From Paramicrosporidium saccamoebae KSL3 (Eukaryota; Fungi; Cryptomycota), in assembly GCA_002794465.1 (NCBI GenBank), contig MTSL01000008.1, forward strand, positions 11,119-43,118: a stretch of DNA of 32,000 nucleotides, given 5' to 3'. The position numbers were made by a program, and so were the translations under genes. Each line of letters begins with the position of its first letter. Within the stretch, counting starts at the first letter, position 1. The notes beneath the pieces are model-generated. The model searched no databases. It was given only the letters and a program-made list of their open reading frames with translations, and was not told the origin of the DNA. Below are positions 6,956 through 31,429 of the stretch, one piece after another.

Positions 6956-7055
6956 AATAGAGACTGATTTTTGAGGTTTGTAGTAAAGACTCTGTTAAAC
7001 ATCATCCACTTACTATTGATGAGTCCGATCCAGATAACGATACCACAGGTCATTC

Positions 7056-7265
7056 TGTCGCGTAGTGGGGATAATACCGCGGCCCGGTTTAGGCGAGAAG
7101 AGAACCTGTTTACTGCTAATCCTATAATAGTATAGATACACATCACATCCCACTGTCCTCAATACCCAGCAAAGCGATCCACTCTAGCACGCAAATACCC
7201 AACTATTCAACCCTCTGCCTCTACGTCACATAGCCAACTAATCAATCCTCTACCTCTACGTCACA
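7056..7265 (+). mobile_element. Copy I of a short TGT...ACA element (solo-LTR-like or Ginger-like MITE), 210 bp
   Basis: Starts TGTCGCGTAG and ends CTACGTCACA (imperfect 10-bp inverted repeat). 4-bp TSD ATTC at 7052-7055 and 7266-7269. The 3' terminal ~32 bp is internally duplicated (7199-7230 and 7234-7265). Confidence 0.85.
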
Positions 7266-7400
7266 ATTCCAATCGTGTTAAGAATGGCTGCTTATAAAGG
7301 AGCCGCATACTTTAACAAAATTCATTCGCTCATCAAAAGACTCTTCACTGGAATTCTAGAATCGTAAATGTATGAGCGACATAATCTATTATAAATTTGT

Positions 7401-8444
7401 CTATTTTATAAATACGTAAATATGTGGACTAGTTCTGATGGGCGCAGGGAGTAAATTTACAAAAGTATCAGAGTCATAGCCAGAGGCAATGCTGAACGCC
7501 AATAGCCCCTTCAGAGCGGCCGCTACTCTCGTATGGGCTTGTCTTTCGGATGATTTTGCACCCCTCTGTACGCTTCCAGTTATGGGAGAAGCTTCAAGCC
7601 AATCGTCCAACAGACTATTGCTGAGCCAGGCAATAATTTTGCTAAATTTCATCTCGCAGATTCCCTCGAGAATTTGATCTGATGTGGTCTTTCGAAGTCG
7701 AGCGCCGATCAAAGAGTTACTTTGTACAGACTGCCAGCAATAATGTAGCGGTGGGGCACTCTCAGGTGCCATCTTGGCCTTTGTGTAAGCAGCAACAAGT
7801 TGCATGGCGCATTCCTGTGCCTTATTTCCTTTCTGCCTCGACAGCGTCCCATCGGCAAGCGCAGCAAGCAAGTTTCCCGTATATGGTAATAGTACAGTCA
7901 TTGGTACTGCTTTCAGAGCAGCCTCAAGAAACTTGATAGAGTCCCTCCTAATGTCAGTGTGTAGATGTGTCATAGCCAGAAGGGCAAACTGCACCCACCC
8001 ACCAAAGAGCGCTCTCAGCTCGACCTTTTGCTCCCACAAATATACAGTCAGATGTAGAACAGCTGTCCGTACTACCGCCTCATTATCCACCATTCCGCGA
8101 CTTGCATGCTCCAGAAGAACGTTAATAACATCGCCAATATCCGGATGCTCTTTGCAGCGCTTTAGAAGTGTTGCAAAGGCTTCTTTTCGGACATTTGTAT
8201 TGTAGTGTCCAGTTTGGGAGAGTGTTGGTTTCAAGATGGCTGCCAAGGCTGACGAAGAGCCTTCTGATGTGGCTTCTATCTTTTGGGCTGTCGAAAGGTG
8301 CTGTTCGCGCAGTGCAAGGCGTTTTGTTTGAAAGGACGTGTTTGTAGCGTTCACTGCGCCCGCTTTGGCGCGACCCACCTTGACTTTGGACTTTTCAAAA
8401 TCTTTTGGACCCGTTTTCCTCGACTTTTTGTTCAAGTTGGCCAT
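7401..8444 (-). CDS. IPI1: IPI1/TEX10 N-terminal-domain protein (Rix1 complex, pre-60S/pre-rRNA processing)
   Basis: N-terminal KK..KDFEKSKVKVGR.K....NATNTSF.TK.L, then HYNTNVRKEA and AMTHLHTDIRRDSIKFL, typical of Ipi1_N. Likely start ATG 8444. Confidence 0.85.
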   Translation of the reverse strand: MANLNKKSRKTGPKDFEKSKVKVGRAKAGAVNATNTSFQTKRLALREQHLSTAQKIEATSEGSSSALAAILKPTLSQTGHYNTNVRKEAFATLLKRCKEHPDIGDVINVLLEHASRGMVDNEAVVRTAVLHLTVYLWEQKVELRALFGGWVQFALLAMTHLHTDIRRDSIKFLEAALKAVPMTVLLPYTGNLLAALADGTLSRQKGNKAQECAMQLVAAYTKAKMAPESAPPLHYCWQSVQSNSLIGARLRKTTSDQILEGICEMKFSKIIAWLSNSLLDDWLEASPITGSVQRGAKSSERQAHTRVAAALKGLLAFSIASGYDSDTFVNLLPAPIRTSPHIYVFIK

Positions 8445-8482
8445 ACCGGGGATGCACTTGCCAAATTGGTACATGTAAATAA

Positions 8483-9022
8483 ATGGTCCCCGGGTCCCAA
8501 CACAACATGATCTGTTTCTGTGTCCTCCTGCTGGCGCTGTTTCAGGTAGCAGATTTACTCTCAGCTACCAATGATCTCACAACACCCCTCTACCTGCGCG
8601 AAGTGTACACTCATGAGATTTTGGATGTAGAGTATAAAATTGGCAACTATTCGGCCTCTATTGCGAGCCCTTACAATGATGCCACCGCTTTTGTCCATCT
8701 CGGCTACAAAAAGCTAACTGCTGGAGTGGAAAATGGCTCCATAGTTTTAGTGCTGCGGGGCAGAGATTTTATCATGGGCGATGCTGCAAACTATGCCCTT
8801 AATTACTCGCCATCTTCCTTGCAAACAGCCACCATCAGACCCATGCGAGGTGACATTGTGATCCTTCTAGTTCCCATGGTACCGATGACGCAGTGCACAG
8901 TGGCCAAATTTAAGATTGAGCTGAGAGTCAGTGGTAGCACATCTCTTGCCGACAAGTTACGCGATGCCTTTTACTATTCCTGCTACTTTAACGTAGCCGG
9001 TTCGGCATTCCGAGTACAATGA
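8483..9022 (+). CDS. Hypothetical secreted protein (probable start ATG 8507, signal-peptide-like N-terminus)
   Basis: 179-aa ORF filling the gap divergent from IPI1, with hydrophobic MICFCVLLLALFQVA. No family recognised. Confidence 0.6.
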   Translation: MVPGSQHNMICFCVLLLALFQVADLLSATNDLTTPLYLREVYTHEILDVEYKIGNYSASIASPYNDATAFVHLGYKKLTAGVENGSIVLVLRGRDFIMGDAANYALNYSPSSLQTATIRPMRGDIVILLVPMVPMTQCTVAKFKIELRVSGSTSLADKLRDAFYYSCYFNVAGSAFRVQ

Positions 9023-9203
9023 TATTTGCACAGTAAACAATCCAAATAATGGTGATGGACGTGTGGTTTAGGGAGGGGTCCTAGGTAGGTAAATGGATGG
9101 ATGGTTGAATGGGAGTAGGCGGTTGAGCGAGTGTAGAAGAATTGATGAGCGCACCTATCAACCAGCTATCTATGAGTCAACTATAATAACTTTTGCTGCA
9201 AGC

Positions 9204-9428
9204 TGTCGCGTAGTGGGGATAATACCACGGATTTTGTCAGGCGGAAAGAGGAGATGGGACGAGAAGAGAATTTCTTCAGTCAATCCAACGACCCATTTAT
9301 AGTCTCACAAATAACATTATCCTCAAATGGTAAAGATCTCATTATTCTTGATCGATTGTTCTGGTTATCCCTTCTCCAAACTAGAGAACTATTTCCAAAA
9401 GACATACTAATCAGTCTTCTACGTCACA
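9204..9428 (+). mobile_element. Copy II of the TGT...ACA element, 225 bp
   Basis: Starts TGTCGCGTAGTGGGGATAATACC (identical to copy I over this stretch) and ends CTACGTCACA. TSD AAGC at 9200-9203 and 9429-9432. It interrupts a 37-bp tandem repeat (agctatctatga(g/a)tcaactat at 9164-9184 and 9430-9450). Confidence 0.88.
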
Positions 9429-9678
9429 AAGCTATCTATGAATCAACTATCAAAAACGTATTTCGCCAATATAAACAGTCTTTACCACAAACTAGCTACC
9501 GGCAACATATTTCACCACCATAAACAGTCTTTAATACAGACGACCCACGAATCAGCCATCAGCAATATAGTTCACCAACTATCAACAACCTTTACTGCAG
9601 ACTCAGAATGTGATTACATACGTTTTCAACAAATTAGCTACAATGATTCTTTATTGCAAATCTCGCAATTTAAACAGT

Positions 9679-10764: not shown

Positions 10765-10873
10765 AGTTGGCACTTCTTAAAGAGCAGCACCAATGGGCCG
10801 GGGTAGTCACGGCTAATTGGCCGAGTCCGTACCTATCAAAATGACCAAAACCGTCCCGGCACCAATCAAACAT

Positions 10874-12106: not shown

Positions 12107-12269
12107 CCCCGGTTGCGTGGTCGAGGCTCTTGTACAAATCTCCAAACTACAACCTTGACATTTTTAGATGCTCACTAATTATTCATGTACAGCTAATATT
12201 CATGCATATCATGGCAGCAAATACGAAGCACAACATGTTGTCATATTATTGTGTCTTTACGTTTCAGAT

Positions 12270-12341
12270 GACTCCTTGGCGCAACGGTAGCGCGTCTGAC
12301 TCCAGATCAGAAGGTTGAGTGTTCAAATCGCTCAGGGGTCA
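12270..12341 (+). tRNA. trnW: tRNA-Trp(CCA)
   Basis: Acceptor GACTCCT/AGGGGTC, anticodon stem TCTGA/TCAGA with loop CTCCAGA, T-loop TTCAAAT, downstream T-run. Confidence 0.97.
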
Positions 12342-12585
12342 ATCTTTTTGTTTTTGAGGAAATATGCCATTTGCTCAAGTCAGTGTGACTTTGAATATAC
12401 TAATAATAGTAGCAAGTCTCGGTTTGTCTCAAAGACACTTTAAGTTGGCCAAAACATTCACAGACTCTTATTAGACTTAATGCGTAAAACCTACAAATAA
12501 TGGAGGGACGTTTTGTTTCAACAATATTCCAAAGTGTCCAAGTTTGTAGACTCGCAGTCATCTTGATATGTAGAGCTTGCAACCC

Positions 12586-13979
12586 ATGATGAGTCCTTTT
12601 TTGGTTCGGGGATACTCCAAGTTGGCCAAGCGGGGTTTATAAACTCGTGCTCATCTCATCTTAGGACGACTAGTAATATTGGGAAGCGGATGGGGTGGAT
12701 TTGAAGTGCTCCGGAACATTGACCGCCGCGCGTACGAAGTGGTTGTTGTATCGCCAAGGTACATTCTCCGCTCTGCTGGACGCTTGTTAGAAATTACTTT
12801 GTCTTTACCCCGCTACTGGCAAGCACTTGTGTGGGGACCTTGGAGTTCCGCTGTGTCACCGAGCCCATCCGCAGAATAGCCCCAAACATCAAATATCATC
12901 AGGCTTTCTGCACTGATGTTGATTTTGAAAACGATCGCCTTACTGCCCACAGTGCTCTTGAACTGGAAGAGCATGCAGCACAGTTTACGCTCGAGTACGA
13001 CCGGTTGATTATCGCCAGTGGTGCCACCAGCAACACTTTTGGCATCCCGGGTGTTTCCGAGCATGCATTCTTCCTAAAAGACATTTCCGATGCCCGTAAC
13101 ATTCGCCACAGAGTGTTAGAATGCTTTGAACATGCCATGCAACCCGAGACACCCGACACGGAGAAACGTCGCTTGTTGCATTTTGCAATTGTTGGTGGTG
13201 GTCCCACTGGCGTTGAATTTGCTGCCGAGCTGCACGATTTTGTCAAAGACGACATGGGACGCATTTATCCCTCCCTTTGCGATTATGTGAGGATCACCGT
13301 CTATGATGTGGGACAGCGCATTCTGGGCAGTTTTGATGAGAAATTGGGAAAATATGCAGCAGACCGCTTTGCAAGGGAAGGAATACGAGTAGAAGTTGGG
13401 ACTGGTGTCTCCAAGGTGGACAAAAAATGGATTGTTCTAACCACGGGAAAGACTGTGCCAGTTGGGATGATTGTCTGGGCCACTGGGCTTGCCCCGACCA
13501 TGTTTAGCAAGAATCTTGCCTGTAAACACGATCAAAGCACAGGTAGACTGGTGACTGATGACAAATTGCGACTATTCAATCCGGCAGGACAAGTCTTGGA
13601 AAATGTATATGCTTTGGGGGATTGCGGCATGATCGATACGATGCAACTTCCTTGTACGGCCCAAGTAGCCAAGCAACAAGCCCAGTATCTATCCCGTGTC
13701 CTAAATGCACACGCCAAAAATCTGAAACCGACATCGGGGGCGGACCGCTTCGTCTTTAATCCACTAGGCACTATGGCATACATTGGGGGATGGAAAGCTG
13801 TTGCAGACATGAAGATTCCATCAAAAGGCCACCCTGAGCAAAAAGTATCTGGGAGACTCGCATGGTTAGTTTGGAGATCTGCCTATTTTTCCATGGCCGT
13901 GTCGGTGAAAAATAAGATTCTCATCCCAATGTATTGGTTTCTTACCTGGATATTTGGTCGCGACATTAGCAAGATTTAA
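12586..13979 (+). CDS. NDE1: Alternative (type II) mitochondrial NADH dehydrogenase, 3 exons (12586-12634, 12665-12758, 12791-13979; 443 aa)
   Basis: [14 protein letters not shown]|[53 protein letters not shown] introns of 30 and 32 nt restore the frame. Confidence 0.92.
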
Positions 13980-14383
13980 ACGGCGTGTAAAGCATGGCAA
14001 ACTTGTATAATTAGTGAGATGGCGAATACAATGAAATGGCTCGCTGATTGTTGTGTAATAGGGTAGCTACTACAAAATTGGCCACTGTCATTTGTTTGGG
14101 GCGGTAGAGATTACTTAATAATTAGTGAAGCCTTTATAGACCTTTCCACCTACACTTGAAGAACGAATCAGTTATATAGATTATGACGTATTGATGGACC
14201 AACTGTTCCATCTGATCATTCTCTAAACATGCCTTGTACACGAATCGGTTAATGTTTGCAATAATGGCCCTTTGCCTTGGACCCTTGATATGATATTATT
14301 GGGCCCTGGTCTTTCTCAAGTCTTGGATCTATACCGGCTATTCGCCTTACATCCATCACACTCCTCCCAAATATACATACAAG

Positions 14384-15373
14384 ATGGCTCCCATGCTTAT
14401 GAACAAGAAGCGCAAGGTAACAATTCACTGGTGGAGGACAGTCTCGTGGTTGCTGGCGGGCGTCTGGAGCGATATGCCCTTGGGAACGCTTAGGGTCCTT
14501 GGCACACTCTCCAGGTTGCTATCCATCCATCCTCGGACTGCATTTCCGCCTTGTATATGATGATTCCCATGATTCCTCTCGTTTGAATGTCTTATTGCAA
14601 CGGACGCACTGTGAATAACATGGTTGAGACTGATACAAATCCCTCTTCTTTTACTGGTGCTAACCTCGTAGTTTGTCAACGACGGTGTTTTCTACGCTGA
14701 ACTCAACGAACTCCTCACCCGCATGCTCTCTGAGGAGGGTTACTCTGGAGTCGAGGTCCGCGTCACCCCCCAACGCACAGAAGTTATTATCCGCGCTGCC
14801 CGCACCCAAAAGGTCCTCGGAGAGAACGGTCGTCGCATCCGCGAACTTACTGCTGTCGTCCAGAAGCGCTTCAAGTTCCCCGAAGGCTCCATTGAGCTCT
14901 TTGCTGAAAAGATGGAGAACCGCGGACTGAGTGCTATTGCTCAGTGCGAGTCGATGCGCTTCAAGCTGCTCTCCGGACTGCCCGTCCGTCGTGCCTGCTA
15001 CGGAGTGCTCCGTTATGTCATGGAGTCTGGAGCCAAGGGTGTAGAGGTCATCATCTCCGGCAAGCTCCGTGGTCAGCGTGCCAAATCTATGAAGTTTGTT
15101 GACGGTTTCATGATCCACGCTGGTCAGCCCGTCCGGGACTACATTGATTACGCTGTCCGCCACGTCCTCCTCCGTCAGGGTGTCCTGGGCATCAAGGTCA
15201 AGATTATGCGCGACTGGGATCCCAAGGGAATCAACGGACCCAAGATGCCCCTTCCTGATGTTGTCACTATTATGGATCCCAAGGAAGACACTGCCGTCGT
15301 TGCTGCCGGTGTTCCCTCCACTGAGGCATTCGGTCAGCGTGCCGCAGCTCCCCAGCCTGAGATTGCTCAGTAA
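14384..15373 (+). CDS. RPS3: 40S ribosomal protein S3 (uS3), exons 14384-14416 and 14672-15373
   Basis: [11 protein letters not shown]|[44 protein letters not shown]. 255-nt GT-AG intron with a GCTAAC branch point. Confidence 0.98.
14551..14638 (+). ncRNA. Box C/D snoRNA A, intronic in RPS3
   Basis: C box ATGATGA at 14557-14563, D box CTGA at 14630-14633, terminal stem TTGTA/TACAA, just upstream of the branch point. A near-identical paralogue lies at 15650-15736. Confidence 0.88.
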
Positions 15374-15649
15374 AGTCCCCAAATTCTATAATAAATACGA
15401 TGAAGGTTTATTAATTCTCTGATGAGAGAGAGAGGGATAGCGTCTAGTTAGTTGTCTGGACTGTTTCTAGATGGATACCAATCAATCTATAGACGGGCAA
15501 AGAGTCTATTGGCATTAACTACATTTACGAGAATCAGCTGGCTCGATAATAACATACTTTATTACCAAACATATACAAACTCTCACAACTATAATGGTTA
15601 GTACCAAGTTCAAATAATTGAGTGATTGGATGAGTGAAAGAGTTGGGTT

Positions 15650-15736
15650 GATGTCAGTTTTAACCTTGTTATTCACAGTGCGTCCGTTGCAATAAGACAT
15701 TCAAACGAGAGGAATCAAAGGGAATCATCATTCATC
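15650..15736 (-). ncRNA. Box C/D snoRNA B, in host-gene intron 2
   Basis: C box at 15725-15731, D box at 15654-15657, terminal stem GATG/CATC. It shares an identical 51-nt core with snoRNA A. Confidence 0.88.
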
Positions 15737-15833
15737 GTTACAACCTTACTCATCGTCTCACTCAACACCATACCTTCATGTGATTATATACAGGACAGAC
15801 AACGCCTAAGGATAAGAACAGTTCAATACGCAG

Positions 15834-15938
15834 GCAGTCGAGTCATCAGTTTAACCATAGTATTCGCAATGTATCGGGTAATGACACCTAGAACAAGAGG
15901 TGTCAGAAATCTTTGGGAATCATCATCTGGTCGACTGC
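15834..15938 (-). ncRNA. Box C/D snoRNA C, diverged paralogue, in host-gene intron 1
   Basis: C box at 15920-15926, D' CTGA at 15903-15906, D box at 15846-15849, 8-bp terminal stem GCAGTCGA/TCGACTGC. It shares ATGATGATTCCC and GAATA..ATGGTT..CTGA with A and B. Confidence 0.82.
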
Positions 15939-16091
15939 ATGCTGGGTACATTACCTTGGTTTCAATGGATGCACTAGGACCATCCGGGTCAATGTTCGCT
16001 GTGGTCGCTATTTCACCAGGGTCACCTATTTAATGGATTTTATAAACAGGCTATTGTGGGAGTGCAATTTCCACAGAGCCCCCGACTCGTA

Positions 16092-16157
16092 GTTACACTA
16101 TACTACGCATTATAATATACTAGATTACTTTACATTACATTACATTACATACCATAC
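16092..16157. repeat. 5-bp-period microsatellite (TACAT-like)
   Basis: tacattacattacattacatac core with degenerate 5-mer flanks. Confidence 0.7.
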
Positions 16158-16232
16158 TTTCATTTTTATCATGTCCTGATAGAATATGTTACGCTATGGC
16201 ATACTTGGTATACGTTGGAGATGGCTTACAAA

Positions 16233-16841
16233 TTAAACAACGCGTCTCACCTCAAAGAAGCGCTTCAGCGAATTGATCTGGAAGTAACAGACGGCGCCCA
16301 GCATGACAATCTGAATAAAGAACCACCACATGACACGGGAATTAGTGTTCAGAGCGACTACATAATGAGTGGATAACGGAAAATCACCTTCACGATGCTT
16401 CGTCTCACGTTCCATGAGGAAGGCGTGTTCGTCACGGACCATACGAAGACCGTCGTTGAGTTCGCGCAGTTCGTTCTGAACGGGATCAAGCTTTGTTGCC
16501 GATTCTGCAGAGCTGCCGAGGATGCTGAAGGATGGCTTTTTGGGCGGTGTTCCAACCGGGTCCATATTCCTAAACTTGAATGAATGCACTCCCGCAGTCT
16601 TGGCTGTGAGCGCATAAGAGCCATATGTCTCTGCTGGTCCTTCGAAAATGACACCCTCCGGACTACTAAGACGGAAGCCAATGGTGCCGTCGACATTTTG
16701 GAATTGAACGCCCCAGTTGGAGCCCTTGGCAAGGTCATCAAAGAATTCAATCTCCTTGCCGGGACGCAACTCGACAGTTTCGCACTGGACAAAGGCGACT
16801 AGTGCCGTTACCAAGACGATGAATGCGTCCAAGGCCAACAT
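16233..16841 (-). CDS. EMP24: p24/GOLD-domain cargo receptor (beta subfamily), with an in-frame 30-nt intron at 16358-16387
   Basis: Signal peptide, GOLD domain, coiled coil, HRE|VALNTNSRVMWW, TM and FFEVRRVV tail. Removing the GT-AG intron restores family spacing. Confidence 0.88.
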   Translation of the reverse strand: MLALDAFIVLVTALVAFVQCETVELRPGKEIEFFDDLAKGSNWGVQFQNVDGTIGFRLSSPEGVIFEGPAETYGSYALTAKTAGVHSFKFRNMDPVGTPPKKPSFSILGSSAESATKLDPVQNELRELNDGLRMVRDEHAFLMERETKHREGDFPLSTHYVVALNTNSRVMWWFFIQIVMLGAVCYFQINSLKRFFEVRRVV

Positions 16842-16969
16842 TTCCACGGTAAAGTTATAAAATTAGTTTCGTGTTATCATTTACGCATTCCGACCAAACA
16901 TTTTAGTTCAATATGTCCACCGTCCACTGTTGCGCTGTATGTTTCGGGAGCTTTCAGTATTCCTAACTT

Positions 16970-18094: not shown

Positions 18095-18187
18095 GTCGAT
18101 AAATGAGGGGATTTGTATTTACCGAACAAGGGTTTCCACTAAAAAGGAGCCCTCTAGCGGCTTGGTATGAATCGCTATATATCAGCC

Positions 18188-18295
18188 CTGCACCATGAGT
18201 CGCTATCGACTCTGCACCATGAGCCACTATCAATCCCCGCATAAAAATCACTATTAACGCCACACCACAAATCATAAGTCACTATCAATCCCCCC
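18188..18295. repeat. Degenerate ~24-bp tandem repeat upstream of DOM34
   Basis: ctgcaccatgag(t/c)c(g/a)ctatc at 18188 and 18212, followed by two more decayed units containing cactat. Confidence 0.7.
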
Positions 18296-18319
18296 CTAAT
18301 CTCACCTTGAACAATTTAT

Positions 18320-20593: not shown

Positions 20594-20618
20594 CCAGAAA
20601 CTAAATATATTTAATTTT

Positions 20619-20966
20619 ATGTCTACTGATTGGGTACCAAAGCCAACTGTCGGAGCTGTTCCTCAGCGAGTGGAGCGGTATGGCTTTTCTCCCGTCAGTC
20701 TCCCGACCAAGCCGGACTATGCAAAAGACCCGCGTGTGATTGAACTGGGTGAGCGGCTGATGAAGGAAGTCTTAAAAGGGAACGGGCGAGACCTTCCAGA
20801 CCCTTGGGCGAGACGCTACGCGTGGAGGAACCATCCGTTTTACTCACCAGTCAACGTGTTGAGGAATGCATTCCCTGGACTGGGAATCGCTGTGGTTGCA
20901 TTTGGAATCTATCTTGGTCTGGAAGCTGCTGGCATTACATCTTCAGACAAGGCACAGCACCATTAA
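20619..20966 (+). CDS. NDUFB3: NADH:ubiquinone oxidoreductase (complex I) B12/NDUFB3 subunit
   Basis: DPWARRYAWR..P......NAFPGLGIAVVAFGIYLG signature. Start ATG 20619; 115 aa. Confidence 0.8.
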   Translation: MSTDWVPKPTVGAVPQRVERYGFSPVSLPTKPDYAKDPRVIELGERLMKEVLKGNGRDLPDPWARRYAWRNHPFYSPVNVLRNAFPGLGIAVVAFGIYLGLEAAGITSSDKAQHH

Positions 20967-21201
20967 ATAGTCTTTGTACATGCGAGAGCTATGTAAGATG
21001 TAAGTCTTGCTGAGAATGTGATGAATTAAATACAAAGTGGCCTTTACAAGGACCCTGTTAGATTGGGGATCCCCTAAAAGACTGTACAAAATAAATGATA
21101 CCGGAGAATTTGTCCACGGCGACCCTCATTATGTGTCAACGGATCAAAAGCCCAATAAAAAATACATTATATTCCTAGTTGATTCTATGCTATTTCTGCT
21201 T

Positions 21202-22731
21202 CTACTGTCTATTGCGTCTTTGTCGCTTTAAATTCTTTTTCTTCGATGGTCTCCTCGTTGACGATCTTCTGCACGCGCCACATCGGGCTTTCTTGCATTC
21301 ACACCAGCGTCCATAAGAATTCAGATGCTCACCAGTAGTGCCTTTTGTGCTCAGAATTTCATAGTCCCGGTTACTAAGCGCGGCACCGCGCTCGGGCTGT
21401 ATTCTAATCGATAAAGGTTGCTTTTCAGCGGGTAAAGACTCTTTCTCAGAGGATAAAGACTCTTCCTCAGCGGGTGGAGACTTTTCCTCGGCGGATAAAG
21501 GTGCCTTTTCAACGGATAGAGGCTGTGTCTCAATAGATGAAGATGTCTCATCCACGGATAAAAGCTGGCTCTCAGGGAGTAAAGGTTGCTCCTCAGCAGG
21601 TGCAGAGCGTTCCTGAACGAGTGGGGTCACTTTTCTTCTAAAACTCTTGATAGAGTTAGCTCTGTTTGAACTTGGCTGTACTCTAAGGGACTGAGATTGT
21701 TCCTCAATGGATGAGGATTTCTCCTCAGCAGATGAATACTTTTCTTCAATGGATGAAGACTGCTCTTCAGTGGATGAAGAGTGTTTCTCAACGAATGAAG
21801 CTGCTCTCATTACGAAACTCTTGCTAGAATTGGCTCTACTAAGATGCCGTTTACCCAAAGGACGAGGTAGAATCCTCATCCTGGCGAATGGACTCTTCTT
21901 ATTGTCAGTACTGCTATTAATCTTGGCCTTGCGTGGAGATGGGGATCTAATGGACTGAGGCTGTCCCTCGATGGGTGAAGGCTGCTCCTCAATGGATGGA
22001 GATTTCTCTTTAGCGGATGAAGGTTGCTCCTCAGCAGATGCAGAGTGTCTCTGAACGAATGAAGTTGCTCTCATTACAAAACTCTTGCTAGAATCGGCTC
22101 TGCTTAGACGCAGTTTACCCAAGGGGCGAGGCAAAACTCTCATCCTAGCGAATGGGTTTTTTCTCTTCTTCTCCTTAGTGTTGCTATTAAGCTTGGCATC
22201 GCGCGGAGGCTGTACCCTAAGAGACTGAGGCTGTCCCTCAGAGGTTGAAGATTTCTCAGAAATTGATGATCCCTCAGAAGCTGACGAGCCCTCAGAGGTT
22301 GAAGATTTCTCAGAAGCTGACGAGCTCTCAGAGGTTGAAGATCTCTCAGAAGTCGAGGACCCCTCAGAAGCTGACGAGCTCTCAAAGGTTGAAGATCTCT
22401 CAGAAATTGATGGTTCCTCAGAGGTTGATGATCTCTCAGAGGCTGACGAGCCCTCAGAGGTTAAGGATCTCTCAGAAGTCGAGGGCCCCTCAGAGATTGA
22501 AGACGGCCCCCCAGTAAATGAAAAGTATTCTTCAGCATGTTTGGGAGCGTAAACAAGTTCTTCCTTTTCCAATGGCACTAGGGGAGGGCTGACTACAGGA
22601 GGGTCAGACTCGTTGTTGGTTGCAGGGTGGCTTACTGGTGCAGCATTGTAAACTACATATGCTACAATGAATGCAACCGCTATCACCGCAGACGTCAGGA
22701 GCGATAGCTTCAGCAGAAAGTTGCTTTTCAT
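21202..22731 (-). CDS. Hypothetical membrane-anchored or secreted Ser/Glu-rich repeat protein
   Basis: 509-aa ORF with an N-terminal hydrophobic segment, 6-aa and 7-aa repeats, a duplicated ~88-aa basic module, and a Cys/basic C-terminus. Confidence 0.75.
   Translation of the reverse strand: MKSNFLLKLSLLTSAVIAVAFIVAYVVYNAAPVSHPATNNESDPPVVSPPLVPLEKEELVYAPKHAEEYFSFTGGPSSISEGPSTSERSLTSEGSSASERSSTSEEPSISERSSTFESSSASEGSSTSERSSTSESSSASEKSSTSEGSSASEGSSISEKSSTSEGQPQSLRVQPPRDAKLNSNTKEKKRKNPFARMRVLPRPLGKLRLSRADSSKSFVMRATSFVQRHSASAEEQPSSAKEKSPSIEEQPSPIEGQPQSIRSPSPRKAKINSSTDNKKSPFARMRILPRPLGKRHLSRANSSKSFVMRAASFVEKHSSSTEEQSSSIEEKYSSAEEKSSSIEEQSQSLRVQPSSNRANSIKSFRRKVTPLVQERSAPAEEQPLLPESQLLSVDETSSSIETQPLSVEKAPLSAEEKSPPAEEESLSSEKESLPAEKQPLSIRIQPERGAALSNRDYEILSTKGTTGEHLNSYGRWCECKKARCGACRRSSTRRPSKKKNLKRQRRNRQ
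22235..22504 (-). repeat. 18-bp tandem repeat x15 encoding SSTSEG-like hexapeptides
   Basis: Plus-strand units such as ccctcagaggttgaagat and ttctcagaagctgacgag; 15 x 18 = 270 bp. Confidence 0.95.
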
Positions 22732-23163
22732 GTTCGATGAGCAAACGAAACTATTCCCTCGGCAAGTGGACCCACGATGCCAGCCTAGGCTCCGCGGCTT
22801 TGTACCCTAGTCTTTTCATATCTCGAATATAAAATGGGAGTGCTTGGCGGAGAGTGATAGCAATATACAGGTACGTGTTGAGACGCAATCAATCACTCGA
22901 ATGCGTCCAGCTCCCCAAGTTTCGAAATTTAAGCAGAGATCAGACGGGACATCCAGACCTATCTACGGACCAGGAACTCTGCTCTCTCATGTACTGAGCA
23001 GGCAGCTGCAATTATTTTAAAAGAGATCCGCAGCTTATTTTAACCCATTTCATCGCACGTAGATTGTAGTGAATCCATGGGACACTTAGTGCCGAAAAGT
23101 TATCTACAATTTTTTGTTGAGTGTTAAAAGTATAAATATTTTCCCAAAACCTTATTCTACATA

Positions 23164-23235
23164 GGCTCTTTGGCTTAGCGGTAAAGCGTCGCTCTCGTAA
23201 AGCGAAGATCCAGGGTTCGATTCCCTGAAGGGCCT
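23164..23235 (+). tRNA. trnT: tRNA-Thr(CGT)
   Basis: Acceptor GGCTCTT/AAGGGCC, anticodon stem TCGCT/AGCGA with loop CTCGTAA, GTTCGATTC T-arm, discriminator T. Confidence 0.97.
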
Positions 23236-23547
23236 CTTACCCTTTTGTCAATTTTACATGGCTTTGTTTGGGTAAGAGGGTGCTGCGCTTGTAAAGGGTT
23301 ACGTGGTTCAGACGGGAAGAGAATTCATTTACTATTAATTCAACGGTCCATCTACTTTCTCATAATTCTTAATAAGAATCCTACCAATCAAATTCCACTA
23401 CATTGCAAAGCGTGGACAAATGGATAGTTTAGGGTGCGCTTAGATCCATTCATCCAACTGGTCGCCTTGGCTTTTTCTTTGCTAAATGGCCGCAATCACA
23501 ATACTATTCTACACTTTATAACCACATCACCAGGCTACACTCTGCAA

Positions 23548-24153
23548 TCATATTTCATTCCCTATGGTCGTCCATTTATTACGCAGATTATGCCGTCGTC
23601 CAAATATCTCTAGGTACGCTCCGTTGGGGACGAGCTGCTCAATCATGTCATACAACTCCTTAGGTTTCTTGCTTTGCTCCCTCCGCTCCGTATATATTAC
23701 ATCTGATGCAATGCCCATCCTCCACTCATCTCCCTTGCCCTTGATCCCCACTAGACAAGTCTCCTTGGCGTGCTGTAGATAGTATCCATGACATTTTGCC
23801 AGTCGCCTATTGACAGTTCGTTTGACCCAAATGACCTCTTGCGCGTAGGTGTAGCCCCATTTCCGTAACATTTGTAGTGCCATTGGTAACTTGATATTGA
23901 TAGTCCATAAGAATAATAGGCCGTTCTTTGACAGACCCTCAATTGGCAGTGCAAGTATTTCACGATCTGACATTTGCGAATACGACAGTGCAACGCCACG
24001 AGTCGGTTGCTGGCCAGCGAGCTGCCACGGCGGGTCCATTACCACCACGTCAAAGGAACCTAACCCTGCAAAGTCCAGTGTCCGGACGTCTGCGCTAATG
24101 GCCTTAGAGTCAGGAGGGGGTGGAGCAAGACATTCCTTGCAGGCGCATTGCAT
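23548..24153 (-). CDS. AMT1: MT-A70 family adenine methyltransferase of the AMT1/MTA1 (DNA 6mA) clade
   Basis: Catalytic DPPW within FDVVVMDPPWQL..QPTRGVA, then WVKRTVN.RLAK.HG.YLQHAKETCLVG, SDVI..ERR.QSKKP and YLEIFGRR.NL..W..IGNE. This matches my recollection of ciliate MTA1 much better than METTL3/IME4. Confidence 0.85.
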   Translation of the reverse strand: MQCACKECLAPPPPDSKAISADVRTLDFAGLGSFDVVVMDPPWQLAGQQPTRGVALSYSQMSDREILALPIEGLSKNGLLFLWTINIKLPMALQMLRKWGYTYAQEVIWVKRTVNRRLAKCHGYYLQHAKETCLVGIKGKGDEWRMGIASDVIYTERREQSKKPKELYDMIEQLVPNGAYLEIFGRRHNLRNKWTTIGNEI

Positions 24154-24185
24154 GACTACGGATAATTAATTTTCAACAAAGCAAT

Positions 24186-25745
24186 ATGGTGTCCAAGGAT
24201 ATCGGCAAATGCTGTCTCATTGTCATTGATGGATGGGGAGTCTCGCCAGCCAACGGAGCAGGAGACGCGATCAAAGCTGCAAAGACACCAAACATGACGC
24301 GTCTAGCCCAAGACTATCCGCATATCGAGCTGACAGCGCATGGCCGTGCGGTGGGTCTTCCCACTGGCCTTATGGGCAACTCAGAGGTCGGTCATCTGAA
24401 CATTGGCGCCGGACGACCAGTGTTCCAGGACATTGTTCGTATCGAATTGGCGCTGGAGGAGGGCAACATGGAGAAAAATGCAGTGTTGATTGAAATGTTC
24501 AACAGAGCCAAGGGCGGCAATGGACGACTGCATTTCGTTGGATTGGTATCCGATGGCGGGGTTCATGCTCACATGGATCATTTGAAGTGTCTTTTGGGAT
24601 ATGCAAAGAATGCACAGGTACCACAGGTATTTGTCCATGCCATCACAGATGGACGTGATACAGCTCCCACCAGCGCAGCTGGCTACATTGAAAATATTCT
24701 GAGCCTTATCAAAACATTGGATAACTGCAAGTTGGCGACAGTAGTTGGTCGGTATTACGCCATGGATCGTGACAAGAGATGGGAACGGACCAAGGTAGCA
24801 TTTGATGCGTTCGTATCGGGAGTTGGCACCGCCCTCGATGATCCCGTAAGCGAAATCAAGGCCCGATATGCCCGGTTTGAACCGGAACGCGATGAATTCC
24901 TAAAACCAATCATTACTGATACTGATGGTCGTATCAGGGACGGCGATGTGGTCATCTTTTTCAACTTCCGCTCTGACCGTATGCGTCAAATAGTCTCCTC
25001 CTTAGGTTTGGGACGGGACAAGCTCCAGTTTGAGGCCAAGGAATATCCAAAAGTCTCCATCGCCTGCATGACCAGCTACAATGCAGAGTTTCCCTTTCCG
25101 GTCCTCAGTCCGCCCCAGAAGCTGAGCAATGTTCTGGCCGAATGGCTGTCCAAGCAGAACGTTGCCCAATTCCATACTGCAGAGACTGAAAAGTATGCCC
25201 ACGTCACCTTTTTCTTCAATGGTGGTCGAGAGGTGACATTTGACGGCGAAGAGCGGAGGATGGTAGAATCGCCAAAGGTGGCCACCTACGACTTGCAACC
25301 CGAAATGAGCGTAGCCCAAGTAGCCGATAGCGTCATTGAAGCCCTTAACACTGCCAAATTTCCCCTTGTAATGTGCAACTTTGCTCCCCCCGACATGGTG
25401 GGACATACCGGCAAATATCTTCCAACAATCAAAGCCGTGGAGGCAACTGATGAGGCAATTGGACGGGTCTATGAGGCATGCAAAAGGACTGGCTACACAC
25501 TGCTCATTACCTCTGATCATGGGAATGCTGAAAAGATGATTTCCGAGGATGGGGGAGAGCACACGGCCCATACCTGCCAGCCTGTTCCCTTTATTGTCAC
25601 CGATCGCACAATCACTCTCCACCGTCCCGCTGATCGTGCTGCTGCTCTTTGCGATGTTGCCCCAACCATACTATCTCTATTGCATCTGCCAATTCCACCA
25701 GAAATGACAGGAGCCGACCTAACCCGGCAACCGATGGCATCGTAA
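24186..25745 (+). CDS. gpmI: 2,3-bisphosphoglycerate-independent phosphoglycerate mutase (iPGM)
   Basis: LIVIDGWG, GLMGNSEVGHLNIGAGR, SDGGVH, DGRD, GRYYAMDRDKRWER, AETEKYAHVTFFFNGG, NFAPPDMVGHTG, TSDHGNAE. Confidence 0.97.
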   Translation: MVSKDIGKCCLIVIDGWGVSPANGAGDAIKAAKTPNMTRLAQDYPHIELTAHGRAVGLPTGLMGNSEVGHLNIGAGRPVFQDIVRIELALEEGNMEKNAVLIEMFNRAKGGNGRLHFVGLVSDGGVHAHMDHLKCLLGYAKNAQVPQVFVHAITDGRDTAPTSAAGYIENILSLIKTLDNCKLATVVGRYYAMDRDKRWERTKVAFDAFVSGVGTALDDPVSEIKARYARFEPERDEFLKPIITDTDGRIRDGDVVIFFNFRSDRMRQIVSSLGLGRDKLQFEAKEYPKVSIACMTSYNAEFPFPVLSPPQKLSNVLAEWLSKQNVAQFHTAETEKYAHVTFFFNGGREVTFDGEERRMVESPKVATYDLQPEMSVAQVADSVIEALNTAKFPLVMCNFAPPDMVGHTGKYLPTIKAVEATDEAIGRVYEACKRTGYTLLITSDHGNAEKMISEDGGEHTAHTCQPVPFIVTDRTITLHRPADRAAALCDVAPTILSLLHLPIPPEMTGADLTRQPMAS

Positions 25746-25896
25746 GACTATTATTGCAGAGTATGAGCTGTTAACTACACATTGAGGGCAATAATATAAC
25801 TCTTTATATCGAATAAGTAACGCGGAATTCACCAATCATTAGATACTAAGCACTGATCTTTGATCTTTGCCTCGTGCTATATGTAAGGAGAATTGA

Positions 25897-27197
25897 TTAT
25901 TCATCAATCTCAATGCGATAACGCAACAAACCGCCAAAACCACCAAAACCTCTTACAAACTGCGCACCCTCCTGGCTCTTGTCAGTGACAAACTCGAGGA
26001 CAGCACCAAAGTTTTGATAATTGTTGGCAAGCCATTCTACCAGCGTCACCTTGTCAGTCATTTCCAGCTCAATCTCCTTGCCCGTTTCATCTTGATCAAC
26101 AAAGTTTTCCCGTCGTTTCTCCTGTTCCTTGTTGAGGACGACGGTGCGGACGGCACCGGTGGAGGGATGCGTAAAGGTATAGCGATTAGCCTCGAGATTC
26201 TCCCAGACAATCAAAGTTTCGACGGCACCCATTTCCATGCCTCGCAGTGTCTCGTCAATTCCAAAGATGAAACGACCCGTGTCCATAGAGATTTCGTCAA
26301 AGTATTTGCCAAGCAACTTTTTCTCCTCAATAAACTTGACACCCTGTAGGACCTCCTGGGACATTTCAATGGCCTGATTGAAGCCATTCTCTCCACCATA
26401 GGAAACGTCGACTGTCTTGATCACTTTGGCCACCAGACGCTGATCAAACATGTCAGACGTCTTCAGCTCCGTCTTAAAGTCGGCGGAACCGGCAAGAACA
26501 AGTCCCGCCACGTTGACCTTGTCATTGGTAATGAACACTTGAACAGCAATCTCGGCCACTTTGCGTACATAATTGTGACGCTTTTCCACCCTCAGACGGG
26601 AGAAACGCAATGCCGACTGTCCACCCCTGCCGTGTTTCTTGGGCAGATCCACGCTAATTTTGTGCAGCACCTCGCGCGTATTTCCACACAGCGTTCCAAA
26701 GAGCGCGCCATTACCATCCATCACAATAAAGCCAAATTTGAGATCACTCTCCAGCAGCTCCTGCAGCGCCTCGGTGTGGAACTTGTTATCACAGAGATAG
26801 AGAGAGGTATTAATGGGCTTGAAGGGCTCAATATCAATATTCACCTTTTTCTCCTTGCCATCCTCAGTGAGTACGGTGCCACAATAGACAACCAAACCGT
26901 TGGGCGGCACTTTGTTGTACAACTTTAGCTTTTGTTGCGTCGAGGTGATTGCGCTCAGTACAGACAGACGGTTGACGCGCGACTTGATGTTGGATGCCGT
27001 TCCGTACTCCTCGGCGAGTTTTTGTGCGATGCGTGGGATTTGGTCCTTGGGCGGGATAATCAAGGATATCATGGACGTTCCATTCCTACAATCAATAACG
27101 ATGCCTCTGCATACCCTCGCGCTGCCTCCAGGCCCTTTATGAGCTTTTTAATCTTGAACATTTCTACATTTTGCGACGATTCATTTGCTTGTTCCAT
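25897..27197 (-). CDS. SUP45: Eukaryotic release factor 1, exons 27115-27197 and 25897-27085 (423 aa)
   Basis: [12 protein letters not shown]|[28 protein letters not shown]. 29-nt GT-AG intron at 27086-27114. An upstream in-frame ATG lies at 27344. Confidence 0.96.
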
Positions 27198-27446
27198 TTC
27201 AACCGCCTCTACAAATTCGACAAAGCCAGCGAGACTGTCTGTCCGTTGGTCGTTGGTCTGCTTGTCAAAGCTTCTGCACAGACCGGGGCAGTTTTCCTGC
27301 GTATATTCCCATTGGCAGTCATGAAATTCAGTGACGCGATTCATAGATATTAATCGTTAGTTTGAGTAAGCTTTTTTAATGAACAGTATAGTGTAAAACT
27401 TGTGATATTCTGTGGGAAAGCTTTCTGGATTGGGGATATCAATCAT

Positions 27447-27735
27447 AAGCAATCTCTGATGAGTACTGATTGTTAAGAGCCAACTCTGATGAGTATTGAT
27501 AATTACAAGCAAGCTCTACTAATGAGTATTAATTATTAAAAGCAAACTCTGATGAGCATTGATTACTAAGAACAAACCCTTTAAAAACACTGATAACTGA
27601 GAACAGAGGCCCCCAAAACACTGATAACTGAGAACAGAGACCCCCCAAAACACTGATAATTTAAAACAGAAATCCCCCAGAATAGTGATTATCGAAAACA
27701 GAGGCCCCCGAATACTGTGAATTGAAATCAGAAAA
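27447..27735. repeat. ~30-bp minisatellite, about 9-10 degenerate units, between the CDIN1 stop and the eRF1 start
   Basis: Early units read aagcaa.ctctgatgagta.tgat; later units read gagaacagag.ccccaaaacactgataact. Confidence 0.9.
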
Positions 27736-27737
27736 TT

Positions 27738-28679
27738 TTATTCCTCAGTATCGCACTCTTTGGGTCTATGGGTGAGGGCAAGATCCATCATGGGCGATTC
27801 GATACGGGTGATGCGGGAATCTTCTGGAAAGTCGCCCAACACGGCCACGCCCTTTTGATGGTGTCCCTCCACGGCCTCATCTACGAATCCAAACCAGTAA
27901 ATCACCAGTCCCGGACCAAATCTATTGTAATACGGCCAATATTGGTCCCGCAGATAGGTTGCATGACTGGGAGGGTCGCCAAACCACGCTTTGCTCTCTA
28001 TCCATTTGACAACCAAACCATCAACAGCAATTGGCTCCAGGAGTACGGCGTCTGGAGTGCGGGCATAGCCCATCCTGCGCATTCCCGGTTCGTCGAGATA
28101 TGCAATTCCTAGACGGTCAAGATATGCATTCAGACGGTCTTCATACTCCTTCCCAATGCTGTTCCGAAAAGCGTCCATGGCGGGGCTGTAATGAGTGTCC
28201 ACCGAATGGCAATGCTGCACATTCAGCCGTAGTCCTTCATGCGTTATAAGTGTTGGGTCGCGGTACCATTTGGAATGGGATGGTCTTTTGACGGCGGGTT
28301 TACTCTCAGCCAACTCGAGATCGTCCAAGTCGCACGTAATGCTCTGTACTTTACAAGCTAGACTCTCCACAAAGGCCCGCACAATGACACGAGCCAAGTA
28401 GCATGGCGGCACCAAATGCAGTTCCTTGGTCATCTTTTCAATAACGTCTACGCTTCCCTCGTCATTCCACCGGACGAGGAATCGCTCAAGCAGTTCAGCG
28501 GGCGGTATTTTGAGTCCCTCAAATTTCCAGATACGACGACGTCCAATACTCTGAATCTGTCGCAAGTTGACTCCCTCAATTGTCTTTAAATTGGTGACAT
28601 TGCAATATTCTGTGGCCAGACTAGCAGGCTCTTCAGTGATCAGCCTATGACAAATTTCCTCATACAGTGACTGTTTCAT
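27738..28679 (-). CDS. CDIN1: CDIN1/C15orf41-like (TPD domain) restriction-endonuclease-fold protein
   Basis: GKEYE..L...L...GIAY.DE...R..GYARTPD.VL..PI..DG.VV.WIESKA.FGD and Y.NRFGPGLVIYWFGF. Likely start ATG 28679. Confidence 0.85.
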   Translation of the reverse strand: MKQSLYEEICHRLITEEPASLATEYCNVTNLKTIEGVNLRQIQSIGRRRIWKFEGLKIPPAELLERFLVRWNDEGSVDVIEKMTKELHLVPPCYLARVIVRAFVESLACKVQSITCDLDDLELAESKPAVKRPSHSKWYRDPTLITHEGLRLNVQHCHSVDTHYSPAMDAFRNSIGKEYEDRLNAYLDRLGIAYLDEPGMRRMGYARTPDAVLLEPIAVDGLVVKWIESKAWFGDPPSHATYLRDQYWPYYNRFGPGLVIYWFGFVDEAVEGHHQKGVAVLGDFPEDSRITRIESPMMDLALTHRPKECDTEE

Positions 28680-28702
28680 CGGTACAATGATGCAATGGTA
28701 CA

Positions 28703-28742
28703 GTAGTAATGTGGTAATGTAGTAACGTGGTAACGTGGTAAA
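28703..28742. repeat. 8-bp repeat GTRGTAA(T/C/A) x5 in the CDIN1/PEP7 divergent promoter
   Basis: gtagtaat gtggtaat gtagtaac gtggtaac gtggtaaa. Confidence 0.85.
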
Positions 28743-28828
28743 TAATTTTCCCTTTCTCATGAATGACATTAATGCGGGTGGAATCCCTACGTAAATATAT
28801 ACACCGATGCAATTTATGATTGGCTGCA

Positions 28829-30460
28829 ATGTCTAGTGACGAGGAATGTCGAGGCCGAACAAAAACTGGAGACAGTTCGGACGCGTGCACCTTTACCGAC
28901 GCTCTTTCTGAAACCCACAGCTGTTTAGATGAGGCTGCTAGTAATATTTCCCTCTCTTCCCTCCTCCCCACCACTGCTCAGGACGCCCGTCGTCGCCAGG
29001 CAGACACTCACACTCTCCTCAACCCCGAAGAACCCAAGCTGACCACCAAAATAGCCGGCTGGATGAAGAATGCCGCTACTTATTTTGACGTAAAACCCAC
29101 AACTGTGCTGCGTAAGAGCTCATCAGGAAACATTGTGCAGCGTGTACAGTCAAGTCCGCAGCCAAGAATTGTTGATGCTACCGACAGCATTTGTTCCTTT
29201 CCCAATTGCGTACAGCCGCTGAACATTGCAGTGAGTCGCTTTCACTGTCGGCGGTGCAATGGATGGTATTGTGCAATGCATACGGGTCATCCCTCATTGG
29301 GCATGAAATTGGTGGTGGGTACGGGCGAGCCAAGTCCAACCGGCGTATGGTCACGGGTCTGTCTGCGGTGTTTTGAGGAAAAATATCGCTTCGAGGGCGC
29401 AGTAGTAGTCCGAGGGAGAATGGATCTGCTACTGGAACGGAGAAAGGAGGCCTTGAAGTCCCTGGTGGAAGAGGCGCGGGTATTAAAGGATCGGTTGACC
29501 AAATTGGGAGAGTACAAAGCGTCGCGCAGAATTCCATTTAGAGTCTATGAGCAGCAGATTGTCACATGGCAAGAGGACAGCAGCGTGAATAATTGTCAGT
29601 ATTGTCATTTGCGATTTTCGACAGTAAATAGAAAACATCACTGTCGACTGTGTGGTCGGATTATGTGTGCAGAGTCGACATGTTCAGTGTTCTTCCCCCT
29701 AAACCTCACTGATGGCAAAGTCATTGATCTGCGTCTCTGCACCCAATGCGAAAATACAGCCTTACGACGGCCACTCATCAGGAAGGAGTTGACCAAGATT
29801 AGTCCTTTACAACCACTTCATAGAGAATTACGCCAAGTCAAGGACCAAATCGACGACATTCTGCCCCGATTCAATGATCAGCTCTATCGATTTGAATATG
29901 AAATGGAGCGGCCCGTTCCATCCGAGCAACTTGTTTTAGACGCGCGTCATGAGTCTATGACTGCCCGAGACACTTTGATGCTGCTCTTCAGGCATTACGA
30001 GGGAATCTCCAAAAAAATCAAAATGCTGCATGTCAAAAACGATACCCAAGAATCGCTACTTGGTGAGAATATTCATCGCGCAGCCATGATTTATCTACAA
30101 AGCAACATGTTCTCTCTCCAGATGCTGCCCCGATTAGATATGAAGAGACTGCAGCGTCCTGCTCCAATCTCCATTCCGTCAGTAGCTCCCAGCGAGCGGA
30201 GTAGCGCTGCCTCGTCATTCCTACCGCGCATCTTTCGCGGGACTGTCGAGGAAGATGGCCCAATCCCATTACCGGCCAACATTTCTGCATTGGAGCAAAA
30301 ACTGGAAGTGTTATTTGAGCAAAAGGAACAGCTGGAGGGATTTTTGGCTGCGGCTGTCAACGCCCAACGGTTCGATGAAGTGCGGACATTGAGATTGTCG
30401 TTGGAAGATGTATGTAGAGAGATTGCCACCATCCAGCGCATATTTCGTCGCTTAGAATAA
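28829..30460 (+). CDS. PEP7: Double-FYVE Rab effector (Pep7/Vac1/rabenosyn-5)
   Basis: FYVE-like RFHCRRCNGWYC..HT and canonical WQEDSSVNNCQYCHLRFSTVNRKHHCRLCGRIMC, coiled coils, and a C-terminal Rab-binding-like helix pair (QLEGFLAAAVNAQRFDEVRTL). Confidence 0.85.
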   Translation: MSSDEECRGRTKTGDSSDACTFTDALSETHSCLDEAASNISLSSLLPTTAQDARRRQADTHTLLNPEEPKLTTKIAGWMKNAATYFDVKPTTVLRKSSSGNIVQRVQSSPQPRIVDATDSICSFPNCVQPLNIAVSRFHCRRCNGWYCAMHTGHPSLGMKLVVGTGEPSPTGVWSRVCLRCFEEKYRFEGAVVVRGRMDLLLERRKEALKSLVEEARVLKDRLTKLGEYKASRRIPFRVYEQQIVTWQEDSSVNNCQYCHLRFSTVNRKHHCRLCGRIMCAESTCSVFFPLNLTDGKVIDLRLCTQCENTALRRPLIRKELTKISPLQPLHRELRQVKDQIDDILPRFNDQLYRFEYEMERPVPSEQLVLDARHESMTARDTLMLLFRHYEGISKKIKMLHVKNDTQESLLGENIHRAAMIYLQSNMFSLQMLPRLDMKRLQRPAPISIPSVAPSERSSAASSFLPRIFRGTVEEDGPIPLPANISALEQKLEVLFEQKEQLEGFLAAAVNAQRFDEVRTLRLSLEDVCREIATIQRIFRRLE

Positions 30461-30515
30461 AGTTGTAAATATCATACTGTTTATGCAACACTTATAAAGA
30501 GATGTAATATCTATT

Positions 30516-30697
30516 TGTCGCGTAGTAATGATGATACCGCAGACTTTTTCAGGCAGGGACCAGTTTACTGTTAATCCAACAACATAATTCAGGCGAGGAG
30601 AGGTGAAAGGAAATCTTGTTCACTACTAATCTCAAAATCGGAAGGATACAGATTTCACTATTCTCAAATACCCAACTAATCAATCCTCTACATTACA
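30516..30697 (+). mobile_element. Copy III of the TGT...ACA element, 182 bp
   Basis: Starts TGTCGCGTAGT and ends CTACATTACA. TSD TATT at 30512-30515 and 30698-30701. It shares gtttactg(c/t)taatcc and a 20-nt ccaactaatcaatcctctac with copy I. Confidence 0.85.
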
Positions 30698-30703
30698 TAT
30701 TCA

Positions 30704-31427: not shown

Positions 31428-31429
31428 GA

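Follow-up and report, generated by a model that had tools for sequence, protein, structure and literature searches.

We describe here a family of short interspersed elements in the genome of Paramicrosporidium saccamoebae KSL3, a member of the Rozellomycota that parasitizes the nuclei of amoebae (PMC5701793). Three intact copies (I, II and III) lie in the terminal 32 kb of contig MTSL01000008.1 (43,118 bp; assembly GCA_002794465.1), a stretch that we call the window, and two decayed copies (IV and V) lie on the same contig. We conclude that these sequences are real, previously unannotated mobile elements of a known kind in an under-studied fungal lineage. The target-site duplications, which are far beyond chance, support this, as do copies IV and V and the lack of such elements in the syntenic DNA of two relatives. 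The assignment of the family to a class is provisional; we consider it probable that each copy is the solo long terminal repeat (LTR) of a Gypsy-type LTR retrotransposon that an integrase had inserted. The sequence of this genome that we examined amounts to 38.4 kb (38,412 bases) of 7.3 Mb, all on MTSL01000008.1.

The strongest argument for mobility comes from the flanks of the intact copies (Table 1). Each of the three is bordered by a perfect duplication of fixed length, 4 bp. At the spacings of copies I, II and III, 0.38%, 0.38% and 0.60% of the window positions, respectively, have identical 4-nt flanks, and the joint chance of three such duplications is about 9e-8, which is negligible even if a few alternative registers are allowed. 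The common 11-mer TGTCGCGTAGT at the 5' end occurs in the window exactly three times with zero mismatches, compared to ~0.015 occurrences expected from simple arithmetic. Because of the target duplications, the conclusion that copies I-III are insertions made via a 4-bp staggered cut is well supported, and so is the attribution of their TGT...ACA ends to the type that DDE integrases of retroviral type and related enzymes join. The coordinates, the lengths of 210, 225 and 182 bp, the shared 5' end, the 3' ends and the flanks ATTC, AAGC and TATT reported in the initial annotation are exactly those found in the sequence. The same annotation proposed that removal of copy II and one of its duplications restores a 37-bp tandem repeat: indeed, once copy II and one AAGC are taken out, two units of 37-38 nt stand head to tail, identical at 30 of 37 positions and at 20 of the first 21. 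As there are only two units, this repeat lends modest, though independent, support to the insertion boundaries.

Table 1. Coordinates of the copies found in the window and of their target-site duplications.
Feature	Position in window	Strand	Basis and remarks
Copy I, left target-site duplication ATTC	7052-7055		identical to 7266-7269; chance 0.38% at this spacing
Copy I, 210 bp, TGTCGCGTAGT...CTACGTCACA	7056-7265	+	nhmmer, E=1.8e-39
Tandem duplication (35 nt) of the 3' end block in copy I, 2 units, 88% matches	7195-7265	+	Tandem Repeats Finder
Copy I, right target-site duplication ATTC	7266-7269		sequence read
Copy II, left target-site duplication AAGC	9200-9203		sequence read; chance 0.38% at this spacing
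Copy II, 225 bp, TGTCGCGTAGT...CTACGTCACA	9204-9428	+	alignment, profile search
Copy II, right target-site duplication AAGC	9429-9432		also opens the second 37-38-nt unit of the two-unit tandem repeat, which was split by the insertion
Copy V, old and degenerate, ~127 bp	23281-23407	+	nhmmer core 23303-23350, E=2e-5; outer limits by eye
Copy III, left target-site duplication TATT	30512-30515		sequence read; chance 0.60% at this spacing
Copy III, 182 bp, TGTCGCGTAGT...CTACATTACA	30516-30697	+	alignment, profile search, BLAST
Copy III, right target-site duplication TATT	30698-30701		sequence read

Three copies had been counted initially, and the profile search raised the number on this contig to at least five. 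Copy IV, detected with a profile of copies I-III (E=2.6e-8), occupies positions 2752-2931 of L001, 3.5 kb upstream of the window; its start reads TGTTGCGTAGTG, its end is a decayed CCGCTACGGCA, and its flanks are not duplicated. Copy V was detected with a profile built from four copies, copy V itself being excluded; it has a decayed 5' end, a 3' end CTACATTGCA and likewise no target duplication. No sixth copy emerged from the profile search of the 38.4 kb examined. Copies IV and V represent older insertions in a decayed state. The five copies add up to 924 of 38,412 bases, i.e. 2.4% of the examined stretch, which is well above the genome-wide repeat content of 0.53% given in the genome paper, where repeats are described as mostly simple or of low complexity and transposable elements are not mentioned (PMC5701793). 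Our literature search found no description of transposable elements of P. saccamoebae in other papers or in the supplements of PMC5701793.

All five copies lie on the + strand and share three blocks, a 5' end, an internal block and a 3' end block, in an asymmetric layout. The interiors of copies I-III align poorly, with a mean column identity of 62%, in agreement with the strong divergence noted initially. The first ~27 nt are identical at 26 of 27 positions between copies I and II, and the 3' end block CAAATACCCAACTAATCAATCCTCTACGTCACA at 26 of 28 (93%) between copies I and III. The internal block, which consists of a purine-rich stretch followed by GTTYACTGYTAATYCAAC and then by a short A/T-rich box, is conserved in all five copies. 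Some of these modules are duplicated in tandem. Copy I owes its extra length to its 3' end block, whose 35-nt duplication gives two CTCTACGTCACA ends 35 nt apart, of which the outer one alone adjoins the target duplication. In copy III, the internal block GTTYACTNNTAATC is doubled together with the purine-rich part upstream of it, and BLAST accordingly matches positions 1-67 and 36-128 of copy I to two adjacent places in copy III; in copy IV the internal block also appears doubled by eye. The terminal inverted repeat is short, with 8 of the first 10 positions complementary (TGTnnCGTAG) and nothing beyond 10-13 nt. Both ends conform to the pattern TGTNR, with TGTCG at the 5' end and, on the complement of the 3' end, TGTGA in copies I and II or TGTAA in copy III. 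The copies show no foldback or structured RNA (they fold no better than shuffled sequences, with z-scores from -0.6 to +1.2), no subterminal inverted motifs, no tRNA-like motif (ARAGORN detects only the two true tRNA genes) and no A-rich tail, and there is no Rfam match in or around copies I-III at E<=1, the hammerhead families included.

Environmental relatives of P. saccamoebae were identified via 90%-identity protein clusters and protein searches. The closer of them, represented by the JGI samples 3300042203 and 3300042204 and by some Logan runs, shows ~84-86% nucleotide identity in coding DNA, and no copy is present in its ~22 kb of short contigs (L005-L012). On one of these contigs, L012, the FYVE gene (3' end only) and its convergent neighbour are separated by a spacer of 96 nt. 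Similarity to the window ends 15 nt past the FYVE stop codon, and the spacer has no significant similarity to any copy, the weak match to copy III being no better than those obtained with shuffled sequences. The minus-strand gene of the window has a homologous last exon that ends at 30781, so the spacer at the copy III site is 320 nt long; it comprises 55 nt, copy III (182 nt), the second TATT (4 nt), 8 nt, a 72-nt hairpin and 3 nt, so that copy III and one duplication account for 186 of the 320 nt. Copy III is absent from the close relative.

The hairpin just mentioned (30706-30777) is near-perfect, with 30-nt arms that are 93% complementary and a folding z-score of about -10. It is situated past both the right duplication of copy III, at a distance of 8 nt, and the stop codon of the minus-strand gene, at 3 nt, and it contains TGTCGCTACGACA, loosely like the element ends. 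Only its left arm could be aligned to L012, in a permissive alignment, and its scores against several generic models of microRNA hairpins stay below threshold.

The distant relative (65-82% nucleotide identity) is represented by L014, taken from a 97.9-kb contig, and by L015 and L016. No copy is present in these ~37 kb, of which L014 is syntenic with the window at 12480-30460. At the site of copy V, which is covered by the distant relative alone, both the copy and the neighbouring tRNA-Thr gene are absent from L014, where the spacer past the MT-A70 gene measures 178 nt compared to 816 nt in the window. The tRNA-Thr(CGU) gene itself lies at 23164-23236 of the window, and the syntenic spacer that lacks it corresponds to L014 10733-10910. 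For the copy II site, no comparison is possible with L005 of the close relative, where Ipi1 has the opposite orientation to that in the window and is separated from ERV by another gene. In L005, Ipi1 is on the strand opposite to ERV (both are on the same strand in the window, 7401-9022), and the place of the 171-aa gene, which was not seen in L005, is taken by an unrelated multi-exon gene. A simple inversion of Ipi1 and the 171-aa gene would put the breakpoints in the spacers that hold copies I and II. Recombination between these two copies was considered as the cause of the inversion and rejected, since they run in the same direction and the duplications still match on either side of each copy. 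Finally, a scan of JGI metagenome contigs with TGTCGCGTAGTNNNGATNATACC returned two matches only, both GC-rich and without similarity beyond the pattern, and we treated them as chance.

The window contains ordinary, densely packed host genes, according to the annotation and Pfam matches, and all five copies are intergenic. Copies I, II and III each lie between convergent genes, 56-182 nt past the stop codon of the gene on the + strand; copy V lies between tRNA-Thr (45 nt upstream) and the 3' end of the MT-A70 gene, and copy IV upstream of a PX-domain gene. The gene coordinates indicate that about half of the intergenic DNA other than the insertions is convergent spacer, and that divergent promoters measure only 25-33 bp. 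The placement of four of the five copies downstream of genes is therefore a weak bias (about p=0.05), which we attribute to selection in a genome with such short divergent promoters; selection alone can explain it. The intergenic position of all the copies and the lack of usable splice sites at their ends led us to reject the possibility that they are introners.

How, then, did these sequences arise? If they are solo LTRs, a retroviral-type DDE integrase would have joined the CA-3'OH ends of the DNA copy to a target cut with a 4-bp stagger, and gap repair would then have doubled the 4-bp target. Recombination between the two LTRs of a full-length element would have left a single LTR and kept the duplication intact. 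The conserved interior may correspond to the promoter architecture of a U3 region, with the purine-rich stretch and GTTYACTGYTAATYC, sometimes doubled, followed by a TATA-like A/T box. The intact copies probably came from diverged source lineages, whose ends were preserved by the need for recognition by the integrase, and were inserted fairly recently. Because the ends and duplications are intact despite the interior identity of ~62%, the divergence probably arose among active source elements, and insertions I-III are comparatively young. A rough estimate, which assumes ~20% change per lineage, puts the odds of 33 terminal and 24 duplication bases surviving decay in place at the order of 1e-6.

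Several points speak against the solo-LTR reading. Duplications of 4 bp are less common than those of 5 bp in LTR elements of fungi, and 127-225 bp is at the short end of the size range of LTRs. The examined 38.4 kb contain no full-length element, paired LTRs, primer-binding site or polypurine tract, and no reverse transcriptase or integrase gene. Copies I and II do not form an LTR pair, as host genes lie between them and each has its own duplication. The initial annotation had stated that no autonomous partner is present in the window, and this holds: the annotated genes are ordinary host genes, and there is no room for an autonomous element because all intergenic gaps are shorter than 900 bp. 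The conservation of ~27 nt at the 5' end and ~28 nt at the 3' end, seen in some pairs of copies, exceeds the usual integrase site and would also fit ends bound by a transposase. The intergenic DNA of the relatives is too diverged to provide a base-exact empty site. A genome with 0.53% repeats (PMC5701793) leaves little room for several 5-kb elements, unless these were collapsed or binned out of the assembly.

In an alternative reading, the ~200-bp copy would itself be the mobile unit, a non-autonomous cut-and-paste DNA transposon resembling a miniature inverted-repeat transposable element, mobilized by an integrase-related DDE transposase of the IS481EU type or by an atypical Ginger2. About 27 nt are conserved at each end of a variable interior, and very low repeat content suits small elements better than 5-kb retrotransposons. 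Moreover, the TGT..ACA ends, the inverted repeat with 8 of 10 matches and the 4-bp duplications agree with the published signature of IS481EU (PMC10045372), and Ginger elements have been reported from Rozella allomycis and are counted among the core DNA transposons of Fungi (PMC5751038). However, the inverted repeats and targets differ from those of Ginger1 and Ginger2, IS481EU has been described so far only in parabasalids (PMC10045372), the copies have neither subterminal inverted motifs nor foldback, all five share one orientation and an asymmetric layout, and the examined stretch encodes no transposase. We regard such a DNA transposon as the main rival, though rather unlikely. A bolder version would see in the ~200-bp units a still-active non-autonomous family, IS481EU-like or "LTR-only", that moves in a compact rozellid genome without an autonomous partner of its own and was perhaps acquired horizontally in the nucleus of an amoeba. 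We consider this improbable; if the units did turn out to be IS481EU-like, they would be the first IS481EU outside parabasalids.

The small size (127-225 bp), the presence of several diverged lineages and the lack of a partner in view could also point to some other non-autonomous retroelement that borrows the integrase of an LTR element, such as single LTRs of a terminal-repeat retrotransposon in miniature or an LTR-only unit, and only loosely a short interspersed nuclear element (SINE) or a retrozyme. The 5' end TCGCGTAGTGG resembles the A box of polymerase III promoters at 10 of 11 positions, by eye. Nonetheless, ARAGORN and Rfam reveal no tRNA-like or hammerhead motif, no internal unit with a primer-binding site and polypurine tract was seen, there is no A-rich tail, and the fixed 4-bp duplication and TG..CA ends are unlike those of SINEs mobilized by long interspersed nuclear elements. 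A borrowed integrase appears very doubtful to us, and the two loosely related candidates were rejected outright, the tRNA-derived SINE for the lack of a tRNA-like head and of a tail and for a duplication fixed at 4 bp, the retrozyme for the lack of a hammerhead motif in copies I-III (Rfam, E<=1). It could be argued, finally, that the copies are not mobile at all, but represent a conserved element of the host, regulatory or a non-coding RNA, that is located 3' of genes and has flanks identical by chance: four of the five follow a gene or tRNA of the + strand at 45-182 nt, in the same orientation, and the internal block is conserved in all five. Three perfect 4-bp duplications, with the joint chance given above, and two syntenic relatives that lack the copies despite conserved flanking genes make this scarcely credible and already close to refuted. 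The poorly conserved interior, the lack of Rfam matches and the lack of excess folding argue in the same direction, and the last two led us to reject the non-coding RNA variant.

Solo LTRs thus remain the explanation that we favour, because of the TGTNR ends, the short inverted repeat, the asymmetric blocks with tandem duplications of modules and the lack of foldback. The element class itself is ordinary. Nonetheless, since the family makes up ~2.4% of the examined stretch compared to 0.53% published repeats, annotation has probably missed part of the mobile elements of this reference genome, which represents a key lineage that stands between Rozella and the Microsporidia. As the intact duplications show, integrase-type transposition operated after the split from the nearest sampled relatives, which bears on genome compaction and the loss of transposons on the branch to Microsporidia. 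The insertions may also serve as presence/absence markers for the typing of strains.

Several other features of the window deserve mention. A 73-nt inverted repeat, 90% complementary, is formed by 14553-14642 on the + strand and 15645-15736 on the - strand; it is likely to represent a C/D-box small nucleolar RNA (snoRNA), with one copy in the first intron of RPS3 and a predicted paralogue downstream on the other strand. Weak Rfam matches (SNORD60-like with E=0.9, and snoR1-like at 15840-15932 with E=0.0017) are consistent with this candidate, and both copies are ~80-85% conserved in L014 (18205-18287 and 18707-18756), far above the surrounding non-coding DNA. The window and the distant relative also differ in that RPS3 is inverted in place with respect to its neighbours (window 14384-15373, L014 18559-19522); small inversions of single genes thus appear to be frequent in this lineage. 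The deposited model of PSACC_00098 (30781-31941), with 278 aa, ends at 30986 and has probably missed the genuine final exon: homology to the counterpart in the relative lies in an open reading frame in another frame, 30781-31068 (E=7e-12). PSACC_00098 also contains an internal duplication, 31509-31931 resembling 30986-31492, and shares only 33% identity with the gene that occupies this position in a relative, the other compared proteins of which are ~89% identical or more. A protein search with this lineage-specific membrane protein retrieved PSACC_00098 itself as the sole match. The frame of the RIO2 kinase (5657-6955) runs through an acidic, Asp/Glu-rich tail built of 24-nt repeats (6736-6927) up to 6955, and the deposited model has 282 residues. 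Tandem arrays occupy 27426-27735, between the eRF1-like and TPD genes, with 30-nt units that contain CTGATGAG followed by 32-nt units, and downstream of tRNA-Trp, at 12423-12629, a 30-nt repeat occurs three times at intervals of 88-89 nt; no Rfam family matched either region.

It remains to compare the family with known systems, feature by feature. The initial annotation left two options, solo LTRs and derivatives of Ginger-type transposons, of which the former fits the features tested, whereas the latter fails on both the length of the inverted repeat and the targets. With Ginger1 and Ginger2/TDD the family shares the TGTNR ends, the 4-bp duplication and the integrase-type chemistry. However, Ginger1 has terminal inverted repeats of 40-270 bp and 4-bp duplications of CCGG (75%) or CCGT/ACGG (24%) (PMC2836005), as opposed to a 10-nt repeat (8/10) and the targets ATTC, AAGC and TATT, and we rejected it. 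Ginger2/TDD has inverted repeats of ~45-297 bp, prefers RTATAY targets and makes duplications of 4-5 bp (PMC2836005); the length of the duplication fits, but with an inverted repeat of 10 nt and TATA at none of the three targets it was rejected as well. GingerRoot/IS3EU was set aside for its published 6-bp duplications, compared to 4 bp here. IS481EU, a third class that the initial annotation did not mention and that is known only from parabasalids, has TNT..AYA (often TGT..ACA) ends, inverted repeats mostly below 50 bp, duplications of ~4, 15 or 25 bp and known non-autonomous families (PMC10045372). Our copies resemble it in their TGT..ACA ends, 10-nt imperfect inverted repeat and 4-bp duplications, and differ from it in that duplications of ~15 and ~25 bp were not seen, three copies being too few to judge length classes; no IS481-like DDD/E transposase gene is present in the window. 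From solo LTRs of Ty3/Gypsy the copies differ in that no full-length partner was seen in the 38.4 kb, in their small size (127-225 bp), in the 4-bp rather than the commoner 5-bp duplication and in the strong dissimilarity of the interiors of the three intact copies. On the other hand, the end pattern of Gypsy LTRs is TGTNR (PMC2836005), and the family resembles these solo LTRs in the TGTNR...YNACA ends, the short imperfect inverted repeat, the short duplication of fixed length, the asymmetric interior with tandem duplications, and the isolated intergenic copies without an internal region. Thus, the solo-LTR reading is one that fits every feature tested here. Solo LTRs are familiar from other compact fungal genomes, as in the case of the sigma elements of Saccharomyces and the many families of Candida albicans that consist of solo LTRs only, and the zeta LTR of the Yarrowia element Ylt1 is flanked by duplications of 4 bp.

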